Shown here: positions 2,800-61,020 of the stretch, piece by piece
Numbering within the stretch: the first letter of the stretch is position 1
Layout of the letters: every line of letters begins with the position of its first letter
DNA from: Zygnema circumcarinatum SAG 698-1b
Taxonomy: Eukaryota > Plantae > Zygnematophyceae
Length of the DNA: 64,000 nucleotides
Assembly: GCA_037447605.1 (NCBI GenBank)
Contig: CM074819.1
Span: 744,001 to 808,000, forward strand
Direction: 5' to 3'
Position numbers and translations under genes: made by a program
The notes under the pieces: model-generated
What the model was told of the DNA's origin: nothing
Databases searched by the model: none
Seen by the model: only the letters and a program-made list of their open reading frames with translations

Positions 2800-5700
2800 G
2801 CGTCTTGCTTTGTAGGGCTTCCGCTGCCCATGGCGGTTCGGGTCTGTGATCATTTTGTCTATGATGCGGGCTAGATTTTTCACAGGCGGAGTTGATGATG
2901 CACAGGATTACGGAATATGGAGGGTTGACGCGCCCTTTCTGGAGGCTATCTTGCGTCCACTGTTGGTGCGGAGCGGAGGGAGCGGCACATACAGGTACAT
3001 GGAGTCGCTAAGCCTTTTCTGCTGCCGTTTGCCCCGTGAAGGTCTCGAATCTGCTTGGGGTAAGATGCTTAAGATGCTTATGGCAGTCCTTAGTTTCGTA
3101 GCAAGTGTAGTTACGATGTGTAGTTTTGACAGTAGTCAAAGTTGGCATGGTCGTTGTTTTCCTTGCCCTTCTTGTCTTGTGAGGATTGCGTAGTTATTGT
3201 GTTGGCTGTCCCGGTCGTTCTTTCTAGATTCGAGGTTTCTGAACTTCTTCACACGCTCTGCAGACTCTTTTCCTGGCGTTTCGAGGACCGTCCAGCACGG
3301 TTGTCGTCAGCTGTCTATGAAGATCCACGGCGTGTCCTGTCGTCGCCGCAGCATCAACTTCGGCCATACCAGCAACAGCATCTGCAAGGGCTATTGTGTC
3401 CTCAGTATGCAGGGTGAATATCTTCTGGTTGTGATTCTCTGCTGCGCCAGAGACGTCATTAGATGGCATCGCAGCGCCTCCTTAGCCCTATGCGCGCACA
3501 TGATTTGCTTTTAGTGGGCTCATCCTCATGCTCTTGTATTCTATCTGTTCCACGGGGGTGCGCTCTCGTGGTCGGGTGGACTTCCAAAGTTATCCGGGGG
3601 TAGAGCCTCCGGTTTTCTTGGCGGGCTGCGGGTTTTTCCCGCAGTCCGATGGCCTGGGGGGATGGGATTCCTGGGTTTCTCCTTTTTTTTGTTGCTGGAA
3701 TCCATATGGCTCTACAGTGTGGTGTCGTATTGATAGCCCTTCACCAAAAGTTGGCACAGACCATTCGACAACCTCACCACTGAGTTACGGCAGAAACAGT
3801 GACAGATGCGACAGAACGTACACAGGACTACGCATTCTCTCACTATTCAAACCGAAGGTTCATGTCAAGCCGGAGGCTCTCTACTTTGATGGTATCAGTG
3901 GCGTTCAGGTGGATCTGCATCGATTCCATTATTGCAGTGTCCCGACTATGCGCCCGGTGCGTCGGGTAGGTCAACATGCGACTCTTACAGACCTTGGCGG
4001 AGTTGTTAATGGAATCCGTCCAGCACACAGTCGGTACCTGAAGCCTTTTGAGGGCTCTGTTTGGAAAAAAGCCGGAGATCGTTGGTCAAACCGAAGTGAA
4101 TACCTTCACAATTGGCCTTATTTCTCTCTGAAGCAAGTTCTCTACAACTCACGTACTCCGGCTGAGCACAAACAGTCCCTCTTTGACAGTGCAGGCAATG
4201 GATTTTTCGATTTGCATGGAGCAGTGAGAACAAAAACTACACTTTCCATTTACAGCGTACTTTTTTGCATTGATTTCACTTGCAACCAGTGTCTTTCTTT
4301 TGCCAAACAATTCGCTGTCTGTTGGATTTAAGATATTGTGCACCCCCTTTTTGCTTTCGGCTCGTTCTGAGTGCTTTGAAATTTGCCAGTTCTACTCAAC
4401 CTCCCAGTAGTAGCCGAAGGGCTGAAGAAGCTACTTGTCCTCCTATAGTTTGTTTTCAGAAAATCTATGTACTGCATATCTAGGACCGTCCCTGTTTGCA
4501 GTCTTCTGACCTATTCGCTTAGTATCAGTTATTAGTCGATGCAAGACCCTCTTGCAGTCGATGGTGGAGAATCTAATGTTGTTGAGGGGATTCGCCTTGT
4601 CATATTGTTGTCGGTTGTCGGCGTGTCAATCAGCTGGAAGTTGTCGTCCTTTCAGAGGTTCATATGATGATATGCCAGGGAGACGAGGTTTCGGTTGTAT
4701 GACGCCGACTACTGGCTCTGCACGCTCTAGTTTGGAGAGAAGATTTTCGGAGGCGCTTCAAGCTTTCTTGTGCTCGGCACATCAGTGTGTGGAGGTGCGT
4801 TTTCATCCTGGCTCTGGCTTGGTTTATGTTGGCATGAGCTGCTAGGTTAATGTGATGTCATGTCTGTTTGGTCTTCTGTGTTTGTGCTTTATATTGTCTA
4901 CATGTCAGTCATACCTCTTTGATGATTTATGAATATGCAGTTTCTCTTGAATGGTCGTTTGATCGTTTGGCTTTCTTCTCTTGGAATGATTGCTGATGTT
5001 CCACCGCAGGAGTTCTTACATGTTTAGCTCCTACACGGTTGATTTACAGTACTGTCATGTTTGTCAGCCTCTTCTTTTATTTTAGGAATTGTATACATAG
5101 GCTGTATTTGACGCTTGTTTTGTGTGTTTATCAGGACCCGAATCGCTCCACGACGGTGGAACGTGTGGACGGATGGAAGACAATTTACTAGCGCATTACT
5201 ACAGTCGATATCAAGTTTTTCCGTGCTAGGGAGCCGTCTTCTACCACCGACGCTATTACAGCCGTTCCGAATCGTGCTTTGTCCGCCTTCTATTCGTTCG
5301 TCATTCGTTTTTCTTTCGCAGTGCTCCTGCCAATCCCTTGGTATCGTTATGTTCTTGGAGGGTGCATTCGTACGGGCTGGCAGTCTTTGAAGGAGCTTCT
5401 CGTTTTCTTGGATGTGGTGCTCCCTGTCATCATAGCCTTGTTGGTGTCTGATTTTGAATCTTTGCTGGCTGTCTGGTCTTTATTCTCCAACCCGAGAAGT
5501 GAAGAATTTTATTTTTTTAGACGAATACTAAATATCACGAGCAGGCGACTGCCCCTGATCATGAACATGATGGTGGTGATGCTGGCTGTACCTTGTTGTG
5601 AAGGACTTCTTGGTATTGCAGAGCTGGCGATTGAAGCACTATACACTGAACAGACCAAGCGGTCTAGGCGAGATGCGAAGCACTGGCTTTTGTGGATATT

Positions 5701-7368
5701 ATCGGAGCATCGACGCTGATAGCCTGGACTCATACACGATAGGACTCTCAATGTCACTACATGAAATTTTGAAGAACATGCGGTTTTTTCTCAAGGAGTG
5801 TAGTACTTGTTGAATCTATAGGCGGTGATTGCAGTGATGCAGGTCTGGTCCTTCTAACTCTTTCTATCTTATGCTGTTTTGTTGGCTCCATGCGTCTATC
5901 TGGCTGGTTTGATTGCAGATTGGTAATTTGCAAGCAAAAGACTAATCGAGCTAACAGACGGTGAAAATTCGTCATTGCATCTTGCTTGGCAATGATAATG
6001 TTCCTGCATGGTAGTGAGAATGTTCTGATCAAACATTTGTCCGAAATGAAGTGGTTGGCTTGATTGGTTGCAATGTCTTGTATTTGTTGACTGCTTTGGT
6101 TTTCCTCTCGATTTCTGGCTTTCTCTGTCACTTATGCCATCATATGCAGCCATTCTGTTTATCGGTTTTTTATTACTCTGCCGTTGGATGATGGAAAACA
6201 ATCGTGTTATTGTATCCACTGTCTTAGTGCTCAATTACAGCGAGTGATCCCTATATTCTGTTTAAGGACATCCTTCTCTTCAGAGATCAAATGTCGATTT
6301 AGGGCTAGAAAAGGTGTGCAAAGTGTGCGATCTTGTGACTAAGTAGAGGGTTTTGGCATTTTTATTCGGTCTTTTGTTTGCTTGTCATGTTTGGTAAGTG
6401 GATGTTGTTGTGTATGGTACATGACCTCGTGACCGGTTATTTCGTGAGTGTCGAAAGTGAGAGTGACAGAAAGCTAACAGTGCGATGGTGGGGGGAGTGG
6501 GCCGGACTATGGGTTATTAGATGAACGTTTGTGGTGTGTTCTGTGATTTTTCCTGATTCGGTTTTTGCCACATGATGGACAAGGGAAGGATTTACACGTA
6601 AATGTCGGGTCCGCCACACTCATGCCTCATGATTAGGTATATGTAGACCAGTACAAGTGGAAGTGTCTGGGGTGATGATCTTATTCTACGATCTCTCTTC
6701 TTGCTGAAACCACTTGTGATTGCTTTCAACGGGTCCTTCAAATTATTACTCTGTTACAGGTGTAGGCTTGTGTTGACATATCCGTCAGAGAAAATTGGTG
6801 CAGGGTGACGGAACATGAAACATGGGGATAAGTTCTTGGCGGATTCTGGCTTTGTCGGTTGTTTTGACGCTTGCATGCTGTCATGTAGCGGTCACATTCG
6901 ATATTGAAGGAGGTGGTGTGCCGAACACAATGTAGCTGGAGAGTAGGGACTGTATTGGGAGGCTTTTTCACACTGGTGAGTACGTGTTTTTGGCTTGATC
7001 TGAAGTAAGGTCGTTTTTTTTTTTTTTTGTGTAATGGATGTATCTTGTTGTGCATTGTGGAATCGCCCACGGTCAGACTCGAAAAGTTCGAACTCGTAAA
7101 TTTTGACATTTGTTCGTTTTCAGTGTCGTCTCCCTCAAACCGAGTAGGGCGTTTAGCTGTCTTACCGAAGGTCGTCAAAGAAGGCAAATTGTCAATACCC
7201 ATGTCCTTAACGAGGCGTACCTTGCGGGGCCATGTGGGGACAATTATCGTCGACTTTCTCAATTTACTGCAACACATTTCTCCTATTTCTCTTTCCCCTT
7301 CCATTCGTACTTAATTCAGCTTAGTTTTAAGAATAACTTGTCTCACGTCCATGTACTGAGTTCCAAAT
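2800..7368 (-). mobile_element. Decayed L1-clade non-LTR retrotransposon, copy 1 (boundaries approximate)
   Basis: Frameshifted minus-strand remnants: ORF1-like region at 6740-7300; RT-like PTISGFFPNR (~4070) and NNGID...YHQSREP (~3880-3930). Collinear with copy 2 at an offset of about 6.0 kb. Confidence 0.6.
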
Positions 7369-7440
7369 GGTGTGCGGCTTTTCTGGAAGGACGTTTGCTC
7401 TGAAGTGGGCAAATTGTCGGGTTCAACTCCCGGGTGCATC
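7369..7440 (+). ncRNA. tRNA-like cloverleaf (non-canonical; SINE head, tRNA pseudogene or t-element), copy 1
   Basis: GGTGTGC/GTGCATC acceptor stem, 4-bp D-like stem, GTTTGCTC-TGAAGT-GGGCAAAT central stem, TCGGG-TTCAACT-CCCGG T-arm with a B-box-like GGTTCAACTCC. Confidence 0.6.
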
Positions 7441-8372
7441 TTACTAGAAGAGTCGTACATGTGGCGTATTGGTCACGTCTAACAGGTTAATTCCTTTTAG
7501 ATTGAAAACTCTTGAAAGTTAGTCTGCTTGATTTGAAAACCTCTGTCACCATCAACAAAGGGATTGTTAAATTTGCATTATCTGCCGGGGAGATCTTCGG
7601 GGGACAGTTCGGGGAGGATAGGTGTTCGTTTCTGACTGTAGACTGTAAAGTCCCCTAAAGTGACTATGTCTGGTCTTTTAGCCTCTGAAGTTGGCGAAGG
7701 GAAATCCAGTTTTGGCTTTTTAGCACTACCCTACAATATCTTTGAACGATTGTTCTGTTTCTAGGTGTTTGTGGTGTAGCTTTTACAAAATGAATTAAGA
7801 ATTTGCTCCGTGACGGGGCGAAATCTGTTTATATGGTATGCATATGTGGTATTTTATATGGTAACCAAACCTAAAACCCTAAAAACCCTATGGCAAGCTT
7901 TCGCTCTAGGTGACAGTATCCCAGTCAGCAGTTTGCACACTCTTTGTTGCATAATTTTCTTACAAATATGTACTCTGCACCTCCCGTCCTTGACAACCTA
8001 CTTTCCACTTCTTTACTTTGACGTGCTGGTAAAGCTCGTGATGGCCACTTCAATTTATCGTATTCAATCATCTGTCTACCTGTGCTTCAAATCTGTATCC
8101 TGCTGCCTTGGGCGATGCTTTACTTCAATCTCGCAATGGAAATTAATGAAATTACTTTTTAGTAATCTTTCATCTCCCCTCCCTCTCTCCTCTCTCTCTT
8201 CTCTTCTAAAAATCTTTCATTTTAAAATCTTAAAATCAATTGATGAAATTTTCAGAAAGCTTGCAAGCAGTTCCTGGAGACCTCCTTTGAAGCGGCAGTT
8301 TCCTCAGAAGCAGCACACGACCTCTCTTCCGTTGCGGGCTAACACTTCGACCTCACAGTCTCTAGACTGATC

Positions 8373-8432
8373 CAGCCAATCACAGCCTGCCACGTCATCC
8401 ACTGTGTCCACGTGGTGACCTGTGGTTGGCTG
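8373..8432. promoter_or_regulatory. Inverted pair of ERSE-like elements with no assigned gene
   Basis: CCAATcacagcctgCCACG at 8376-8394, a 16-nt spacer, then CGTGGtgacctgtgGTTGG at 8411-8429. Outer arms are CAGCCAATCACAG and CTGTGGTTGGCTG. Confidence 0.5.
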
Positions 8433-8530
8433 CCGCCAATGGAGGGGAGACCCATTCTGGAAGGAATCTGTCTCTTGTCGCCACGATGGTTGCAGTTCTT
8501 TTCAGGGCGCTTTCTTTTTAGTTTATACTC

Positions 8531-8792
8531 GCAGGCCTTCTGCTTGCAGCAAGAGGAGGCTTATTTAGAGGAATCAAACTTGCAGGCCTTTTGCTTGCAG
8601 CAAGAGGAGGCTTATTTGGAAGAATCATACTTGCAGGCCTTTTTGCTTGCTGCAAGTGGAGGCTTATTTGGAGGAATCACACTTGCAGGCCTTCTGCTTG
8701 CAGCAAGAGGAGGCTTATTCGGAGGTATCATACTTGCAGGCCTTTCGCTTGCAGCAAGAGGAGGCTTATTTGGAGGAATCATATTTGCAGGT
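8531..8792. repeat. 51-bp tandem minisatellite, 5 full copies plus a partial
   Basis: Unit gcaggccttctgcttgcagcaagaggaggcttatttggaggaatcatactt starts at 8531, 8582, 8633, 8685, 8736 and 8787. Confidence 0.9.
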
Positions 8793-9259
8793 GTGCTTGG
8801 AGGAAGGAGGCTCATGACGGTCGTGTCGTGTTCACGGCGGCCCGGCTGAAAGCTGGGCGCTTTGTCCTTGTTGTGGAGTGGTTTCGTTATGTCGGGAATG
8901 GTCCCTTTTGTCAGAGTCGGTGATGTGAAGAGGGCGGGCTATGGATGAGTGAGGGATGCTTGGACAGCTGTCCTGCATCAGCCGTTGGTTCAAACGGGAG
9001 TCGGAGAACATGTATAGGTAGAGGCAGTAGTGCTGAGGTTTTTTTCTCTACTTCTTGCCTGATGAAGGTGTTGGTATCCGTATAGGTAAGTTGGTTTGGT
9101 TGTGTAGTTGTGTGGTATAGTTTGTTGTGTTCAGAAGTTGGTGTTGGAGCTGTAGAAGCCGTTTAGAAGCTGCTTTAGTTGTTTCAGTCAATACGCTGGC
9201 TATTAGTCAGTCTTCACGCTGGCTATGAGGGTTGCTCACTTCGTTTTCGAGGCCGCTGA

Positions 9260-12200
9260 AGGTCTTCATATGCTCTGCAGATTCTTGACTTCGCGACTTC
9301 TAAATCTTCAGCCGACCACGAAGAACCACGGCGTGTCCTGTCGTCGCCGCAGCATCAACAGCAGCCATGTCAGCGACAGCATCTGAAAGAGTTATTATGT
9401 CCTCAGTATGCTGGGTGAATATCTTCTGGTTGTGATTCTCTGCTGCGCCAGAGAAGTGTCATTAGATGACATCGCAGCGCCTCCTTAGCCCTATGCGCGC
9501 ACATGCTTTGCTATTAGTGGGCTCATCCTCATGCTCTTGTATTCTATCTGTTCCACGGGGGTGCGCTCTCGTGGTCGGGTGGACTTCCAAAGTTATCCGG
9601 GGGTAGAGCCTCCGGTTTTCTTGGCGGGCTGTGGGTTTTTCCCGCAGTCCGATGGCCTGGGGGGTGGGATTCGATGGTTTTCTTCTTTTTTCTCCCTTTT
9701 CCCCTTTCATTCTCCTTTCTTCTTCCTTTTTTCTGCCTTTTCTGGACTGCACATGGCTCTGCAGTGTAGTGTAGTCTGCTATCAATAGCCTCCCCTGCAC
9801 CACCAGATCTTCAAACAGCCATTCATTTCCTTGATGCAAGAGAATGGAACCGGAGCCGGGATTATTCTGCCTTCGCATTTCCAAACCGATGGCTTACTTC
9901 AAGCAATCGTGACCTATCCATCCATATCTATTATTGGTGTTGTTGGGAGGATCACTTTTCATTATCGTTATTGTAATCTGCGGTGTTCTCTGCATATGCC
10001 TACGGCTGCAAGACCCTTTTCCTGCAGGTCTACTATGTTAAAGTCAAACATCATGCTGAACCCTGGAGACTGGAATCCTCCCAGCAGACACTCGGCCACG
10101 GAAAGTCTTCGGGAAGTTGACATTTGGCAAACAAACTGAATCTGCCATTCAAACTGAAGTGAAGTGAACCCAAGTTTTGAATGTTCCGATCTATCCTTTC
10201 GGAGTCACTCGGCATTCACGAGGTCGCACCTATTGTTGGTTAGCACATGGCGGCCGCATATGGAGGTTTCCGTGGAGCGGAATCAATGATGGATCGTGTT
10301 TTTTTGATGTGCAAGGAGCCGTGGGAACATTAACAAACTTGCCATCCACAGCAGCTTTCCCTCATTCGTTTTGTTTGCAGTCAGGATCCGTCATTTGGCA
10401 CAACAATCTCTCTTCATTGGCATCAAATGATGGTTCTGTGTTTTTCCTTGCTCGGCTAGTCGGGTTCAGTGTTGAATTCGGGAGACTTGACAAGTTTTCC
10501 CAGTTTTAATATTCCAAGAGCAGCTGGATAGATATGCTTCATGCCCTCCAGGGCCACTTCTGCTTTTCCCTGGGCTGTATTGTGTTAAGGGTTTTGATGT
10601 ATTGTATGTGACTGGGCAGTGGATATCGTGTTTTGGTTTGCAGATTTCCTGACCTTTCCTCTAGATTCGATTCTCGTCATTGGTACTACATCAATAGGCA
10701 GTAAGCATCTGAGAGAAAGGAAATGTTTGCTGTCTGCTGCCTTGCCTGGTCTGGAGATATAGGAGCTTTGGAGGTGCATCCGTCATCTGTTTTGTTTCTG
10801 TGTATGGAGGTACGTCGTCTTCCAAGACTTCTGCGTTGTCAGTGGATATGGTTATTTGGTTTTGTGAAGTTGATATGGGGTTTGTTTAGATGACATTCAG
10901 TATCGTATTTAGGTGAGAGTCTCTCCACCTTTGTAGATGTAGAGACTTTTAGTTGCCCTGTTTTGAAACTTCGAACTTCCGTCCCTCATTGATGCGCTTC
11001 CCTTACTGTCTACAGTTTGAGGAAAGCGTGCACTCTAGACCTGCTTTCTTCCTCCGGCATTGTAGGATTACTATTAGCTATGAGAATTTCTCTTAAGCAG
11101 ATACTGCCGTTTTTTTGGAGTGCAGTTAATGTACATGTAGCTGAAAATTTTGGCAGAAAAAAGTTTTGCAAATGTTTGAACCTCTTAAGCAGGGAATAAA
11201 GGACATCGGTGCAGCGCCAGTTCGCTGCTCTGCCTTTGGTTTGGACGAGACTTCAACGATTGCGGGACGGGTGTGGCGCTTTTTCTGCTGTGAGTGGCAT
11301 GCGCTTGAAGAATTTAACTCCGAACATATGAAGGGAGGAGGGGACAGGAGGAGGGGAGGAAAGGGCAATTGGGGAGGAGGAAGGGGAGGAGAGGAGGAGA
11401 GGAGAAATGGATGAAGAGAGGAGAAAAGGACGAGGAGAGGAGGAGAGGAGAAATGGATGACGAGAGGAGAAAAGGACGAGGAGAGGAGAGGAGGCACCTC
11501 CTCTTGGCATCAGAGGGTCCGACTCGAATTTTTGGCTTTCGAGGAAATTTTATTGACGTCCTTAGAGGAGGAGGAAAGTAATCCCGGAGGAAAGCCGGGA
11601 TTACTTTACTGAACTTTGTGCTGTACTGCTTGTACGTATGTCGTATTGTATGCTCAGCTATTGCATGGATGCATGCATGTGCCTCCTGTCTGAAACGCCA
11701 TGTCTGTATCCACGTTCAGCACTATCAGGCCCCTCCTCCCCCCTCCCCCTCTACCCCACACAAACATGCAAAATCACAAAAAATCTGAGTGCTTTATCCT
11801 AAGGGACTGCAGTATCCATTCAAGGGCGAAAAGCAGTCAGCGCATTGCGCTGAACTACATAATAGGGGGAATGGTGTTGGCGTCACACTTTGATCATATT
11901 TTTTGTGAAGCAGAGTGTATCCGCAGACTTTTCAGCTGCCATTCAATTGATCAATTTAGTTAGGCAACTTAGTCACTGTCCCTTTGAACTTTTTTGTCAA
12001 CGTATTACTTCCTCTTTTCTGATCACATGTTTGTAGGGTTCCTTCCTGGTCTCGAAAAGGATGTGTGCGTGCTGATTGTGCTGACTTTGATTACACACGT
12101 CGGTTAGAAATTGGTTGGAAGGACGGGTTTTTGGTTTTTGATTCTTCTCTATCGTTTTTGGGTACCTCAGCTTTAGTGAAAGGGCTTGACGATTGTGGTC

Positions 12201-13368
12201 AGTCACTTACTCAGAAGCATGGCCAGATGCTCAGTTTATGAGGGCCCATGTACTGCTTTTGTTCGGTGGTATGGGCCAAATTGAAAAGGCAAAAACTCTG
12301 GGTCAATGACACTTTCTGAATAAGAAAGGAATCGTTTTTCTTAACCAAATAGCTGATCCCATTCCTCAACATTGTGACTAAATGCACCTGTGGCGGTGGC
12401 CGTTTTGTTTGCTAGAAAAGTGCAGTGTGTTTCCCAATGTAGATTGGTGTACGTCTGTTGTTCTGGTCCTTTTCCATACTTTGGAGAATGGCCGGTGGTG
12501 CTGAGCAGGGTAGAAAGCTGGAGGGAAATTCTTCTTCATGTCCCGTCTCACTGGAAATACAGGACGCACAGGCATTGAATTTTGTGATCTTCAAATCAAA
12601 ATATGGCCCGAGAATACGACACTAATTTCTTTAGCATTTTTAAGGGTTTTGAGTTTTTTACTCGCTAGTGGTACTTCCCCGTGCTGCTTGCAAAAAAAGC
12701 ATTGTCCAATTACACGGTTTTGATGTCTCAGGGCTGCGCAGTTGGTTGGAGTTGTGGAACAGATTATGTGAGGCTTGGAAAGGTGATGTAACTCTCGTTC
12801 ATGTGTGGGGTGGCGTCTAAAGGATGGGATGCAGCTAAAGGTTAGGCAATGTAGCGGAGGTGTGTAAGACTGTAAATGGTTGCACCACTCGATGCGAGTG
12901 GAACTGGCCAACTCTCGTTGAACCAAGTGAGCTTTGGAATGGTAAACTGGCGCATCTAACCCCTTAATTTCGGGATGTGATTTTTGAATACGTGGACTCA
13001 GGCGCTTGAGGAGGTAATTTCATGGTTTCAAACATCAAATATTGTACTACTTTAATTAAAAAATCAAATGACCATGGGCCAATTGGAGCAACCATTAAAA
13101 ACTAGCAACTCCTACGCCTCCTGAGACCTTTAGTGGCGTTAAGGGGTGTCAGACTGACTAGTTGTTCGTAAGTTTGAGACCAAAACGAGTACTCCGGTGA
13201 AATCGCGGTTTTGCTGCAGCGGAGTACTTCCGAAACCTTCTTGTTCGTAAGATTTCGTATGTCTGACACCCCCTATTGTGAGTCTTGAACAGATGAGCCT
13301 TATGGTGAAGCCTAAATATACGGAACTGTTTATGTATGGTTGGGTTAACTCTGGGTCAAAGTGGATAC
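9260..13368 (-). mobile_element. Decayed L1-clade non-LTR retrotransposon, copy 2 (boundaries approximate)
   Basis: Minus-strand motifs in L1 order: ORF1 GPWSF (~13075), zinc-knuckle-like CFFCKQHG (~12690), APE endonuclease KITKFNA (~12590), LHWETH (~12440), GISYLVKK (~12350), RT GKSRSGPGG (~10560) and MFDF (~10050). Many stops and frameshifts. Confidence 0.7.
13143..13273. mobile_element. Small MITE-like element, PIF/Harbinger (Tourist)-like termini, inserted in the 5' part of L1 copy 2
   Basis: Terminal inverted repeat ggggtgtcagac...gtctgacacccc and an internal inverted gagtactccg/cggagtactt. TSD is imperfect (taa vs cta or tat). Confidence 0.5.
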
Positions 13369-13441
13369 GGTGTGTTGGCCCCTCTGGGAGGGTGTTTGCT
13401 CCAATGTGAGCAAGCGGCCGGGTTCAACTCCCGGGCACACG
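13369..13441 (+). ncRNA. tRNA-like cloverleaf, copy 2, followed by an A-rich tract
   Basis: GTGTGT/GCACAC acceptor stem, CCCT/AGGG D-like stem, GTTTGCTC-CAATGT-GAGCAAGC stem, CCGGG-TTCAACT-CCCGG T-arm. About 73% identical to 7369-7440. Confidence 0.6.
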
Positions 13442-14206
13442 TCAGAAATTGAACTAAAGAAAAATGTGAAAAATATTAAGTTAAAGTAAAGATAAGAAAC
13501 GAAATAGAATGCGCTGTGCTGCGACTACTGCCCATGGATAATCCTCTGTCTGTGTTTTTGCAGCAATATTTTTCATATGCTGGGATGAAATTCACATTGG
13601 AGGGTTCACCTTCAGCACACTCGATAATGCTTTCTTTAAGAAGGGCTGCAGAGTTTGAATGCCCACATGTGTTTTTTTTTGTTTTTCTTGGCCTGTACTT
13701 ACACGGGTCAAATGAGAACATGAGATGTGACCAGACACTCAGAACAAGCATTCCATGTCACACCTCTCCAGTCCTGTCTCTCCATGCGAAAGTGTGAAAG
13801 TAGAACCGCATTCTCACTAAATGGAAGTTCCTTATATTTTCCTTTGCAATACAGATTTCGTATCAGACGCATATTTTCCTAAACCCTAAGGTTTAGTGCA
13901 ATTTCTTTCTACTGCAATTCTGAATACTAATACCACATTTGAGCAGCATATTTCTCAAGATATAAACGCTAAGCCCATATTTGTCCGCTCTACAATCAAA
14001 ATCACTTGTAACGTGACATGAAAGAACGTGACGTGACGTGCCAATGCCGCTGCCAATGTACACCGCCTGCATCGCTGTGATGTCTAATTCCTCCTCTATT
14101 CAAATCCGAACCCCCGAAAATAATGAAGGCGAAGTCTGGAAACTTTTACAGAACAAGAAAAAGTTGACAAAGTATGTCGCAATCGCAACATCCCCTGAGT
14201 ATGTTG

Positions 14207-14624
14207 TCACGAGTGCGACATCACTGGCGACGCCTTCCTTACATCATCATCAGAGGGAGAGGCTCTCCTCCAGTCCGTTACCTTTTTTAGGGTTTCCAGA
14301 GACGTTCCGAGCGCCCCTTTGAGCCACTCTGGGAGGCTCTTCCTCTTCATATCCTCCGGCTGACTGAACCCGCGCGTCGAGTTGAGGCACACCAGAAGAG
14401 TGCCCCCCTCATGCAGGAGGACCTGCAGCCCATACACTGACCCGAGTCAATCTCACAAAAACTGAAAAAATTAAAAACCGAAAACAGATTCATAGTTCGA
14501 AATGGAGATGAGGGGATTGGGTGACAATGGCTTGCAAGCAGTTTATTGAATGAGCTCATGGAGGCTTTTTCTCTCTTTCACAGACTCAGATACATGCCAA
14601 CACTCCCATACACACTCCCCACCC

Positions 14625-14844: not shown

Positions 14845-17800
14845 AGAGGGCCTTACCGTGATCCAAAGAGGAAGAAATCCCAATACCGAAGCTGTCCCTG
14901 CCAGAAAGGCACAACCAAGAGCCAAAAAAACACTCTGCTTCACCTGCAAAAAAAAAAGAAAAACCCCAGGAAGATATTATCCACATCAAACCTCATGAAA
15001 CAGAAAGCAACAGGAACCACCTCATCCAGGCTATTCAACGTCAAAGTCTCCAGCTTAAAAATACTAGTTATAACACTTCTTGGGCAGTACCAACAAACTA
15101 ACATACTATCGCAGCCTGAACCCAACCATGGTTTCTCCAACAGTTACACATATCCACCCCGGAAAGGTGCACATATCAACCCCCAAAAAGCCCATACCCG
15201 AACCCCAAACAAACTCCACACAATCATCCGAAAAAGAAGCCTGCAACCAACCATGTTTCCCCTAACAAGCCCCACATATTTACCCCCAAATTCTGCCCAT
15301 GCTTATCCCTACAAGCTCCGAAAAACCACCCCCATCCTCTGTTGTGTCCTCACCAGAGCCGTTGTCTGCCTCGCCTTCGCGATGACAAAGGGCACACCCT
15401 CCAGGCTGCTCTGCAGTAGGAGCACGTCCGCTGCGGCCACAGCTGTGGCGCTAGCCCTCTCCGCCAGGACTACGCCCACAGTCGCAGCGGCTAAAGCAGG
15501 GGCGTCGTTGATGCCGTCTCCCACCATGATCAGACCCCCACTACCACTCTCTCCTGCGTAGAGGAATAACCCCCAAAGACAAATTCGTTCGCGAGCAGTT
15601 TATGAATCAGAAAAGTAGACGATTGCCCTTTTGGAGAAAGAAAGTGGAAAGGTTCACAAGTTGACGGGCACTTTTCCCGACTGGAAAATGCCCTAAAACA
15701 TCTCCAATTTTCTATGTATCTTCCCCCCCCCCCCTCCCCCCCATCGCCCACATGCTATTGTCCTTGCCCAACACCATCCCATCACTCACACATGCTGACG
15801 TCACCTTCCAACACCATCCCACAACGAAATACCCTGCTGCTGACATCATTATGCCGACACCATTCTATCGCTCACACGACAAACCGGTGACGTCACCATG
15901 CTGACGTCAGGAAAACCGTCCTTACTTGCTTCATCCGCCAACCGGCGAACATGTCTGAGTTTATCCGCCGGTTTAAGCCCCGAATAGACTTCCGTTATCC
16001 CTACCGCTGCTCCCACTTTTCTAGCAGAGACTGAATGGTCTCCAGTGAGCATAAGGAGACGGAGCCCTCCCTTCTGTTGGAGCTGCTCTACCACTCCCTC
16101 CACTCCATCTCTCAGCTCATCTTCAAAGTGGAAGAGAGTCACCTGCATGCATGCAAGAGGCGAGAGCAGTTTTCTTGAAAATTAAGGGTTGTTTAATGGG
16201 TGCATGCTGCACCGAGGCTTGAAGGCAAGAAGTCGGCTGAAAAAAGTCAAAGTATTGAGGGGGAAAGAAGGGGGAAAGGTGGGTTAGGTGAGGGAAATGA
16301 ATGTGTGAAACGTGAAGCACTGAAGGACAACCTCAAGTTACAGTATCGGAACTCGAACATCAGATTCTTCTAACGAACAGCGACTTAACATACATGTCCA
16401 TAAAGACATAATAGAAAGGGTTTGATATCGTTGAGTCGTCAAATTGAAAAGGATAAATAATCACTCACAACGAATTGGAGAATTTTTTCATGGCGTGTAA
16501 TTCCCTATCTTGGATTCAATACGCAAAATCGAACAACACACAAACACCTTGCATAAAAAACTGAGCTACATCAAAGCTACATCTTGTTGTATGTTTCATA
16601 TTCTTCTCTTTTCACACTTTGCAGTTTGTGAACCCCAGAAAGGACCCACCTTCTCCTCCACTGCGAGAGCGGCGAGAACGAGCTCTTTGCTGGTGAGGGC
16701 GGAGGAGGCTGCCTCGTGGATGCGACGTGACTCCTCTCCCGCAAGGGAGGCTTCGGAGATATACTCTATGGAGCCAATGCGGGCAGACTGTGGGCCACGC
16801 TTCAGCCCTCCTCTCTGCGGGAGGGAGAGAGGGAGAGAGAGAGAGAGGGAGAGAGGGAGAGAGGGAGAGAGGGAGAGAGGGAGAGGGAGAGAGGGAGAGA
16901 GGGAGAGAGGGAGAGAGGGAGAGAGGGAGAGAGAGATAGAGGGAGGGGAAGGAAAGGGGAAGGGGGAGAGTGAAAGGGAAAGGAAAGGGGATGGCGGGAG
17001 TGTGAGAGAGGAGTTGGAAGGGGATGGGGAACAGTGAGAGAACATATGGATGGGGAACATATCCTCGTATCTTTTCCCCTCATGATCCTCTTCAGTTCCA
17101 CAAGAACAAACGTCCACTATATTTTGAGCTTGTAGAGATCACTTTTTTCTTCAACTTTTTATTACACAAAAGGGCCTTCTAAAGAATACTAAACAATCGC
17201 AAAAGCCTGATTTTTCACCCACCGAAATTGTGGTAACATCCGCAGTCAAGCCCTGCCCTGGAACAGCTCTCCAGTTCTCCACACTGACAGCTGGCAGTGT
17301 ACGGCCCTCCGTTGCCACCAACACGGCTCTGAGGAGGGACAGAGAGGGAGAAAGAGGGAGCGAGAAAAAGGGGAAGGGGAGGAACAGAGAGAGGGAGAGT
17401 GAGGGGGCGAGAGCGAGAGTGAGGGGACGAGAGAGACGGAAAGAGGGTAAACAGAGTGGGGAGGTAGACAAAGAAAGGAGCATGGTTATTCCTAACCTTG
17501 CAATAGGGTGGGGAGGGAGACAAAGAAAGGAGCATGGTTATTCCTAACCTTGCAATAGGGTGGGGAGGGAGACAAAGAAAGGAGCATGGTTATTCCTAAC
17601 CTTGCAATAGGATGTGTTGCTGCTTGCTCGATTGCAGCCGCCACCGCCAAAGCTTCCTCTACACATCCTGGACTGCAGCATGTGACCTTCGACGCTGTTC
17701 CGTTGCCCTCTACTGTTACGGCCGTCAGCGGCCAGTCCTTCCGTTCCATTACAGTTGCGTCGTGTCCATGGAGCGGTTCTATGCTCTTGCAGACCAGTTC

Positions 17801-23646: not shown

Positions 23647-25945
23647 ACGAAACTCCAGCCCAAGTTTCACGGTCAAGGGAAAAAACTCATACAGTATGTG
23701 CCCATACAATTGATCAGCCAATAGGAGCTCATTATTGTGCCACGTAGGCGTCAAATTGTCACGTCACGGTATTCGAGATTATTAAATCCAGAATGGCGTG
23801 CCATCATTGGCCCGCGGGCAGCTAATTTTAAGGCAATATTAAAATTTGCAAATAAAACTGCAAGGGCGGAAAAGTAAACTAAGTTGTCAGACTTCACTAT
23901 GTGGAGGGGCATGGAAAATTTAAGCTGTATATCGCAGCCAACCACGAACTCCGGTAACACGTGTCGGGCAATTTCATAGAAATATTTCTGCCCGAAGTGC
24001 CCAATGACACCAATCGTCGAAGTCGACATTACGTGACGAGATATTACACTACAGTATATGATACCATAAAATCTAAATCTCACGGATGTCCACGTGGCAC
24101 ATCCAACGGTCAAGTTCTTACAACCTCCTGCTCGATCTAACGGTTTGGATTTGGCCACCCAACGGCCACTTTCCACACCTGCATGCATGCATGCTCCGTC
24201 CAATGATCGACTCGCCTTGTATGCATAGCATGCCCTTTCCACACATGCATAATGCATACTCCTTCCAATGAGGACTCGCCACGTATGCTGAGCATGCCCC
24301 ATCCACACATGCATGCATGCATGCTGCATGACCCCATGCCCAGACCAGCCCTGAAGAGCCCAAATTCACTACAAACAAACCAAAATTTACCTTTCACAGA
24401 TTTCCTAACCATTTCCCACATAGAACCCACCGCCCCTCCGGGCCCCGCGAGGCACGGTTTAGGGTTCAGAGAGGGGGAGGGCTAAGGGTTCAGAGGTTTT
24501 AGAGTTCAGAGGGAACAACAAGCAACCTCGCCTACAATAAAAAGAGCGCTAACACAATTACCTGCACTGCTACACAAATTTCGATATTGAAAACTTCCTC
24601 AAACCCTAAAACCCTAAACCCTAGATTGGACCCTAATTTCTCGGCAATTTATCCGTGTTTTTGGCTTCCATTCATGCCTCCCTGAACCCCTGCAATCGCC
24701 ACATGCTCCATGGCCGCCTCCGCCTCCGCCAAGGCCTCCCCCGCCCCCCCAAACCCTCCCCTCTTCCTCCCTCCCACCTTCAACCCCTCCCTCTCCCTCT
24801 CCCTCTCCCTCTCCCTCTCCCTCTCCCTCTCCTTCTCCTTCTCCTTCTCCCCATCTTCCCGACTCCACGCTTTACCCCCACTCCCACTCCCACTCCCGCT
24901 CCCTCTCCCTCCCTCTCTCTCCCCCCCTCCCCCTCCCCCTCCCCCTCCCCCTTCCATCCTCTCTTCCTTCCGCTTCCGCACGTCCTCCTCCTCCCCGTCC
25001 TCCCCCCCCCTCCTCCTCCTCCTCTCCTCCCACTCCCTCTCCCTCTCCCTCTCTAGCAGCGCGGGCAGCGGCGTGGGTTCCGGGTTGAGCCAGGGGTGGT
25101 GCAGCGCCTGCCGGGCGGTGGCCCTCCTCTCGGGGCCGTAGTCGAGCAGCGGCGCCAGGAAGGCCGTGAGCCCCGCGGCGTCCCCCTCCGCGAAGTTGTA
25201 CTTCTCCACGAGGACGCGCTCCAGCGGCCAGTACCGCAGCCGCCGGATGTGCCGGAGCTCGCCGTGGCGCGTGAAGTAGTCGCGGGAGTACCGCCCGCCT
25301 AACGCNNNNNNNNNNGAAGTCGACATTACGTGACGAGATATTACACTACAGTATATGATACCATAAAATCTAAATCTCACGGATGTCCACGTGGCACATC
25401 CAACGGTCAAGTTCTTACAACCTCCTGCTCGATCTAACGGTTTGGATTTGGCCACCCAACGGCCACTTTCCACACCTGCATGCATGCATGCTCCGTCCAA
25501 TGATCGACTCGCCTTGTATGCATAGCATGCCCTTTCCACACATGCATAATGCATACTCCTTCCAATGAGGACTCGCCACGTATGCTGAGCATGCCCCATC
25601 CACACATGCATGCATGCATGCTGCATGACCCCATGCCCAGACCAGCCCTGAAGAGCCCAAATTCACTACAAACAAACCAAAATTTACCTTTCACAGATTT
25701 CCTAACCATTTCCCACATAGAACCCACCGCCCCTCCGGGCCCCGCGAGGCACGGTTTAGGGTTCAGAGAGGGGGAGGGCTAAGGGTTCAGAGGTTTTAGA
25801 GTTCAGAGGGAACAACAAGCAACCTCGCCTACAATAAAAAGAGCGCTAACACAATTACCTGCACTGCTACACAAATTTCGATATTGAAAACTTCCTCAAA
25901 CCCTAAAACCCTAAACCCTAGATTGGACCCTAATTTCTCGGCAAT

Positions 25946-31803
<5,858 letters not shown>

Positions 31804-59832: not shown

Positions 59833-61020
59833 CTATAGCGGCCGTGGGATAATCGTCCCAAACAGAAAATGTTGCATTATGGGGATTTTCTCCAAACACT
59901 CCGCTCGATACATTTTCAACATTCCGGAATTTACTTTCTGCCAAGTCGGAACTCCACTGATGTCATTCAACATGGGCGAGTGCTCGGCTAAAGGCCCCTT
60001 CTTAACCTTCTTTATGAAACTAATACACGAAAAATACAGATACTCGGATGAAAAATTTTCAAGCACGTCGTCATTTTGTATCGATTTCGGTTTCATGTAC
60101 TTGTGACCGATCAGCTGCGAGGAGCCAAAAACAAAGGGAAGAAAGTGGTAGTCATCAAGACCCCACACGCCATGGCTGCCGGCCGGCTCCAACCAATAGG
60201 TCGTCTGCAACTTCCGCATTAAAGATAGGTAATTCACAAAAACTCGCGTTACAACGGCTTGATAATCTTCTCTTCTAATAAGCCCAAGCCTCGCAAGACA
60301 AAGCAAAAAAGCGGCGAAATTCGCTTCATGGCCTGTCCCATAATCGATCCTCGTGGCGTTCCCAAAGCTATCTGCGAAATACGGATATAGTTCCGTTACA
60401 GTTTCCGTTAAACTCTCCGGAAGAATCCGTTCAACCAATGCAGGCCCCTCCTTCTGCAGCCTCCCCTGCCATACCCTAAAAGAAGGGTTTCCGTACCGCA
60501 CAGCTGTCGCAGAGGGAGGTATCTCATCGACCCACGTTGACATCGTCTCTATGATCGAGATTAAGCTTGAGACAAAGTCTGACACGTGGCATTCATCTGA
60601 GAGCTTATGGCCCTGCACGGAATTGCTTAGGTTAACCACAAACCCTAAAAACATGGAAAGCGCTTCCGAACGCATGAATTTTTCCATCTCCGCCTTTCCA
60701 GTGATCCATTTTTGGGGGACTTGAACCCTAATTGGAGGGCTTAGGAGGGGGATTTCACGAGCTTGAGGGACGGAAGCCGTGGATGCCGCAGAGGGAGAGG
60801 CGGAAGGGGGTGGGGGGCCGCCCATTTGAGCCCAGGGCGCAACGCCACCTGGCAGGTCCTGAATGGCTGCAGAAGCTCCACCGTCGCGAGAGAGGCTGTA
60901 GCCGTAGCTCATGGAGGAGGGATGCGAGGAGAGGGGGGGAGAGGAGGAGAAGGGAGAGGGAGATGTGGATGAAGCCATGGGGGAGGAGGAAGAGGGCGAG
61001 AGCGATGGAGTGGACGCCAT
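59833..61020 (-). CDS. PTPA: Serine/threonine-protein phosphatase 2A activator (PTPA), single exon
   Basis: 395-aa ORF with RYGNPSFR, DSFGNATRIDYGTGHE, LEPAGSHGVWGLDDYHFLPF, HSPML and PIMQHFLFG. Confidence 0.95.
   Translation of the reverse strand: MASTPSLSPSSSSPMASSTSPSPFSSSPPLSSHPSSMSYGYSLSRDGGASAAIQDLPGGVAPWAQMGGPPPPSASPSAASTASVPQAREIPLLSPPIRVQVPQKWITGKAEMEKFMRSEALSMFLGFVVNLSNSVQGHKLSDECHVSDFVSSLISIIETMSTWVDEIPPSATAVRYGNPSFRVWQGRLQKEGPALVERILPESLTETVTELYPYFADSFGNATRIDYGTGHEANFAAFLLCLARLGLIRREDYQAVVTRVFVNYLSLMRKLQTTYWLEPAGSHGVWGLDDYHFLPFVFGSSQLIGHKYMKPKSIQNDDVLENFSSEYLYFSCISFIKKVKKGPLAEHSPMLNDISGVPTWQKVNSGMLKMYRAECLEKIPIMQHFLFGTIIPRPL

Follow-up and report, generated by a model that had tools for sequence, protein, structure and literature searches.

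What are two tRNA-shaped sequences that do not appear able to read codons, and why do they still resemble each other when most of the DNA around them has diverged? This question is raised by 64,000 nucleotides of the nuclear genome of the streptophyte alga Zygnema circumcarinatum SAG 698-1b (assembly GCA_037447605.1, contig CM074819.1, positions 744,001 to 808,000 of the forward strand). We refer to this whole stretch as the window and number all positions from its first letter. The two elements lie on the + strand, copy 1 at 7369-7441 and copy 2 at 13369-13442. They occupy matching positions in two collinear units of about 6 kb and differ from each other in a manner that largely preserves base pairing. 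We propose, tentatively and at a little under an even chance, that they are paralogues of a single tRNA-derived gene for a tRNA-shaped, non-decoding small RNA, which was duplicated together with its unit and whose fold has been under selection. The pair fits a known kind and is best filed among the tRNA-derived, non-decoding tRNA-like elements. Judged from the sequence, there is a reasonable chance that the two are real small-RNA genes.

The two copies align with 54 of 74 columns invariant, and the differences comprise 19 substitutions and one 1-nt indel, in line with an earlier note on this DNA that had counted about 20 differences in 73 positions. Copy 1 comprises an acceptor stem of 7 bp, three of them G-U, followed by a D-like arm, a central stem and a T-arm; copy 2 shares this geometry, its pairs being mostly of the Watson-Crick type, and has a G1xG72 mismatch. 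The earlier note had described stems that pair in both copies and that differ mostly by swaps between Watson-Crick and G-U pairs, and this description is borne out: 24 of the 26 cloverleaf pairs are kept in copy 1 and 25 of the 26 in copy 2, and ten pairs differ between the copies by a one-sided change of this type. The one true double change, which had also been noticed, is an exchange of T-A for C-G in the D-like stem (columns 12-24). With both copies considered, 96% of cells are paired, a value that falls to 33-66% when the 3' partners are shifted 1-3 columns out of register. As previously reported, the central stem has 8 bp and a 6-nt loop in both copies (TGAAGT in copy 1, CAATGT in copy 2), and the loops differ at three of their six positions. 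The T-arm, earlier called canonical, is identical over 17 nt and has a 5-bp stem and the loop TTCAACT. This T loop is invariant, as is the TCTGG of the D loop, around which a D-like stem of 4-5 bp is formed. Between the central stem and the T-stem there are 1-2 nt, which correspond to the variable region. Each copy begins with GG, its acceptor stem includes G-U pairs or a mismatch, and the base 3' of that stem is T in both.

Promoter-like motifs are also present within the elements. The B box GGTTCAACTCC is perfect in both copies, and the A box is partial, reading TGGCC...TGG in copy 2 and CGGCT...TGG in copy 1. Directly 3' of copy 2, at 13443-13512 on the + strand, there is an A-rich tract that the earlier note had pointed out (40 A in 70 nt, 57% A). 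Such a composition is unusual, being equaled in only 11 of the 63,930 segments of 70 nt in the window, and copy 1 has no A-rich tract downstream. The predicted minimum free energy of copy 2 is -34.3 kcal/mol (z = -2.1 relative to shuffles), and a covariance model built from the two copies (R1) gives copy 1 a score of 89.6 bits.

Several features are shared with canonical tRNAs, and in particular with tRNA-Cys: a 7-bp acceptor stem, a 5-bp T-stem with the loop TTCAACT, GG in the D loop, and a length of 73-74 nt. The T that follows the acceptor stem is found in Escherichia coli tRNA-Cys as well, and the alignment to that tRNA otherwise shows only generic tRNA similarity. One reading is that the copies function as decoding tRNAs whose anticodon arm is unusual, such as suppressors with a four-base anticodon. 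Consistent with this, ARAGORN at default settings assigns copy 2 a 4-nt anticodon (ccaa) in a call of the type tRNA-???. However, copy 1 is not called at these settings, and in both copies the fully paired 8-bp central stem leaves a loop of 6 nt, compared to the 5-bp stem, 7-nt loop and defined anticodon of a decoding tRNA. With loops that differ, an anticodon is not fixed; the variable region, moreover, is short. At the Rfam gathering thresholds nothing in the window matches, and the tRNA model RF00005 does not match either copy even at E < 10. The tRNA-Sec model RF01852 scores copy 2 only, at 15.2 bits compared to a threshold of 47, a chance-level match. A tRNA-Sec is expected to have a 9/4 or 8/5 acceptor/T geometry, a UCA anticodon and a long variable arm, and the element lacks such an arm. 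The scores of the mascRNA-menRNA model RF01684, 13.9 and 13.8 bits compared to a threshold of 42.5 (E about 4), are likewise at chance level. Relaxed settings of ARAGORN return a 90-nt "tRNA-Gln" for copy 1, a spurious call that takes in upstream sequence. The checks with ARAGORN and Rfam, in which a single unassigned call for copy 2 was obtained and the tRNA model was silent, agree with the earlier view of the elements as non-canonical and non-decoding, and we regard a decoding function as very improbable.

The positions of the copies carry information about their origin. A blastn comparison of 2.5-7.7 kb with 7.7-16.5 kb returned two collinear matches, namely an upstream block and the tRNA-like pair itself. 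The block lies at 2876-4365 in unit 1 and at 8907-10460 in unit 2, with no strand assigned and offsets of 6001-6097. Its identity is 92.5% over 3304-3688 and approximately 99% over the core at 3470-3660, falling to approximately 66% toward the edges. It appears to be non-coding: unit 2 has a frameshift in an 81-amino-acid open reading frame (ORF) of the - strand, and no Rfam family matches the block. The tRNA-like copies are offset by 6000-6001. A third collinear landmark is the plant telo-box AAACCCTAA, found on the + strand at 7874-7882, 433 bp downstream of copy 1, and at 13881-13889, 439 bp downstream of copy 2. Block, tRNA-like copy and telo-box have the same order and orientation in both units, with offsets between 6000 and 6097. 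This drift along the units argues against equal spacing as an artefact, because natural indels would give such drift. The remainder of the units, including the flanks of the elements, shows identity at the random level in global alignment, in local alignment compared to shuffles, and in ungapped comparison including a purine/pyrimidine alphabet. The arrangement probably reflects an old tandem duplication of a unit of about 6 kb that already bore the element, after which the neutral DNA became saturated with changes. The matching positions of the copies in collinear units argue for one ancestral copy rather than two insertions. A chance resemblance between unrelated sequences is scarcely credible, given the 54 identical columns, the exact 17-nt core, the collinear positions and a blastn E value of 5e-7 to 5e-8 within a search space of about 5 x 9 kb, and we reject it.

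Two observations concern these landmarks in their own right. Within the block, about 260-390 bp (3304-3690 and 9305-9693) are 92-99% identical, GC-rich, and contain several strong hairpins with a T8 run at the + strand end; strong constraint on a non-coding RNA or promoter, or else recent gene conversion, may account for this stretch. The telo-box occurs at 27 sites in the window, compared to 0.64 expected from shuffles, and is often paired (for example, 24601/24609 and 46734/46742), a pattern suggesting that this alga uses it extensively in promoters.

Has the fold been under selection since the duplication? The element is 74% identical between units and its flanks are at the random level. 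In a simulation with a fixed structure, in which 19 random substitutions were introduced at the observed ratio of transitions to transversions, only 0.1-0.7% of the simulated descendants kept as many base pairs as the real copies (p = 0.001-0.007). A second simulation, in which the consensus structure was re-optimised for each simulated pair, meets the objection that the structure was chosen post hoc. With copy 2 as the ancestor, it gave p = 0.04 at the observed ratio of 16:3 and p = 0.007 at the local ratio of about 1:1; with copy 1 as the ancestor, p was below 0.001 at either ratio. The ratio itself differs from that of the neighbouring alignable DNA, where well-flanked mismatches comprise 22 transitions and 25 transversions (Fisher p = 0.006), and selection acting through G-U intermediates produces such an excess of transitions. 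In addition, the eight G-U pairs of copy 1 would turn into C-A mismatches if the - strand were transcribed, which suggests that the constraint acts on an RNA made from the + strand. We therefore favour selection on the + strand RNA fold, with moderate support from these two sequences. The earlier note's statement that the elements are under selection for their fold can be kept in this moderate form, upheld by the contrast with the flanks, the 16:3 transitions and pairing beyond that simulated; with n = 2, it is suggestive rather than conclusive.

If this reading is correct, the history and function of the element could be as follows. An ancestral gene would have been present in the unit of about 6 kb before the tandem duplication. 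The neutral DNA of the two units would then have diverged past recognition, leaving the 73-nt element held by selection on its + strand fold. The features held would be the acceptor stem, the T-arm, the bases that make the contact between the D and T loops (GG and TTCAA), and a long central hairpin with a free loop. The B box and the partial A box could recruit TFIIIC and RNA polymerase III (Pol III), and the acceptor/T minihelix, together with the D/T-loop contacts, would allow RNase P, RNase Z and the CCA-adding enzyme to act on the transcript. The predicted product is a tRNA mimic of about 73 nt that is unable to read codons, and it might act as a decoy, a regulator or a primer, or be an unstable by-product. 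Some tRNA-like RNAs with an initial GG and a weak acceptor stem, features that both copies show, can receive CCACCA and be degraded.

A number of observations weigh against a constrained small-RNA gene pair. With only two sequences to compare, just one double compensatory change is seen, the structure used in the test was picked after both sequences had been seen, and a shuffle control of the pairing count is uninformative at n = 2. The fold of copy 1, which includes eight G-U pairs, does not outperform shuffled sequences (z = -1.2), and its stability does not exceed that of copy 2 derivatives mutated at random. Given this marginal stability, a scenario in which copy 2 is intact and copy 1 is slowly decaying is only weakly rejected (p = 0.04). 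The structure itself has more than one solution: the D-like stem can be drawn in three registers, and the 5-nt D loop reported earlier holds for copy 1 and fails for copy 2, while both copies also fit an alternative consensus from RNAalifold that is no cloverleaf and combines a central hairpin of 11 bp with a T-stem of 3 bp. The signals expected of a Pol III gene are imperfect. The A box deviates (position 8 is C in copy 1), and the nearest downstream run of four or more T residues is 54 nt from copy 1 and 113 nt from copy 2, a spacing atypical of Pol III genes in plants. Finally, the near-identical core of the upstream block implies either strong constraint or gene conversion between the units, and some of the similarity kept by the tRNA-like pair could stem from an older conversion tract.

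The main open rival is that the copies are old, inert members of a dispersed family of tRNA-derived repeats, such as the heads of short interspersed nuclear elements (SINEs), solo long terminal repeats (LTRs) of Helenus-type miniature retrotransposons with terminal repeats (TRIMs), or tRNA-Cys-like relics. Their likeness and fold would then be inherited from master copies, or maintained through conversion by relatives, with no function at these loci. We consider this account somewhat unlikely when scored by itself, and its chance is comparable to that of a real small-RNA gene pair. SINE heads and the cores of Helenus/TRIMp3 LTRs are likewise tRNA-shaped and non-decoding, with a B box of the form GGTTC and A-box remnants of the form TRGCY...YGG (PMC10886601). 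Helenus LTRs conserve TRGCY...YGG and GGTTC (Kojima 2024, PMC10886601), and all three motifs (TRGCY, YGG and GGTTC) are found in copy 2. The significant A-rich tract 3' of copy 2 recalls a SINE, the T after the acceptor stem in both copies recalls tRNA-Cys, and the G-U pairs and marginal stability of copy 1 and the short copy-specific matches around copy 2 (described below) could be expected of decaying repeats. However, the flanks beyond the 73 nt share nothing, which means that the copies have neither a SINE body nor an LTR in common and are unlike solo LTRs of one family. A Helenus-type TRIM needs paired LTRs in direct orientation within about 1 kb, a primer-binding site (PBS), a polypurine tract (PPT) and a 5-bp target-site duplication (PMC10886601). 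Neither element has a second copy or partner LTR nearby, a PBS or PPT, or a target-site duplication. Similarly, there is no shared tRNA-unrelated body or visible target-site duplication of the kind expected for a SINE, and the A-rich tract follows copy 2 only. The equivalent positions of the copies in the tandem duplication, the pairing-preserving and non-neutral pattern of substitution, and the lack of any third copy in the 64-kb window when searched with the two-copy covariance model with filters off also argue against a repeat family.

Other explanations place the constraint elsewhere. The element could direct 3'-end processing of a long non-coding RNA (lncRNA) that evolves rapidly, in the manner of mascRNA for MALAT1. 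Such an RNA would start in the block about 4 kb upstream, and cleavage by RNase P would mature the long RNA and free the 73-nt tRNA mimic. The layout of each unit is compatible with this possibility, comprising a conserved 5' block, an unalignable body of 3-3.7 kb and a conserved tRNA-like element, in the same orientation in both. Like mascRNA and menRNA of vertebrate MALAT1 and NEAT1 (RF01684), the copies start with GG and combine an acceptor stem and T-arm with an atypical, non-decoding middle whose central loop is free, and both weakly match the mascRNA-menRNA model. These matches are far under the threshold, however, and the conserved A-rich/U-rich triple-helix motif is absent upstream, where the adjacent 120 nt are neither conserved nor A-rich. 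Moreover, read on the + strand, the upstream block ends in a T8 run. The elements also differ from mascRNA and menRNA in belonging to a streptophyte alga, and we judge this account improbable. Slightly less probable still is that the element acts as DNA, as a B-box site for TFIIIC (an extra TFIIIC (ETC) site or a boundary of the type formed by tRNA genes) that has been kept for protein binding. The most conserved segment is indeed the 17-nt T-arm with its perfect B box, and the A-box-like bases are invariant too. Yet protein binding leaves unexplained why changes in the acceptor, D-like and central stems preserve pairing and why the 5' strand of the central stem is invariant. The elements can also be compared to plant mitochondrial t-elements, tRNA-like folds without decoding capacity that serve as signals for RNase P and RNase Z. 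Unlike t-elements, they lie in gene-poor nuclear DNA with no adjacent mRNA or organellar gene.

The earlier note had spoken of an RNA family. This claim finds no backing here: the window contains just the two copies, and a single local tandem duplication appears to have produced both. In JGI metagenomes, two matches were obtained by a pattern scan, both unrelated and attributable to chance, and the covariance model found no further copy at the matched loci. The same scan of viral contigs gave nothing. Among 185,579 prokaryotic genomes, a pattern combining the T-arm and the 3' acceptor strand had one chance match inside a coding region and matched no tRNA; a close source tRNA of bacterial type is thus unsupported at that stringency. 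A separate observation concerns short fragments of 13-23 nt that match copy-2-specific parts within about 1 kb of copy 2, at 13079-13091 (-), 13592-13613 (-) and 14320-14341 (+). The sum of their six top scores exceeds that of all 300 shuffles, and the equivalent result around copy 1 is marginal (p = 0.05). These fragments may be remnants of local patch duplications. A dicistronic tRNA-snoRNA arrangement was considered and set aside; the downstream sequence is not conserved between the copies, and inspection by eye reveals no C/D boxes in it.

tRNA mimics are known mainly from the ends of vertebrate lncRNAs, viruses, organelles and the heads of transposons. If the pair is truly constrained, it would represent a free-standing nuclear tRNA mimic that a streptophyte alga has retained for its shape, and would provide a simple test case for non-decoding tRNA-shaped RNAs in the plant lineage. 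Should the MALAT1-like reading be true, this would be the first such 3'-end mechanism in the green lineage. An old tRNA-derived repeat would be ordinary, yet it would still warn annotators of tRNA look-alikes that are half-recognised by tRNA finders.

The surroundings of the elements are poor in genes. ORFs are sparse across the window, as in eukaryotic DNA, and the 12 kb or so that hold both tRNA-like copies (2.5-14.5 kb) contain no recognisable protein domain in Pfam. A Pfam scan of all 127 stop-to-stop ORFs of at least 55 amino acids between positions 2500 and 16500 gave matches only to the Hydrolase domain of a P-type ATPase, in exons at 15312-16181 on the - strand. Based on this orientation, copy 2 lies about 1-2 kb past the 3' end of the ATPase gene. 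No reverse transcriptase or endonuclease domain was found among the 127 ORFs, and we discarded a reading of this region as a long interspersed nuclear element (LINE) of the L1 type. Three further ORFs, at 6741-7310 (-), 12594-13019 (-) and 3504-4328 (+), were dismissed as genes and resemble random translations. No organelle-derived sequence was detected.

Two features elsewhere in the window may be mentioned. The segments at 24019-25295 and 25316-26592 form a tandem duplication of 1277 bp in a GC-rich, strongly skewed region; the two halves are 100% identical, indicating that the duplication is very recent or that it is an artefact of assembly. At 59833-61020 on the - strand, a complete phosphotyrosyl phosphatase activator (PTPA) domain is encoded in one unbroken ORF of 395 amino acids, and the gene appears to be intronless.

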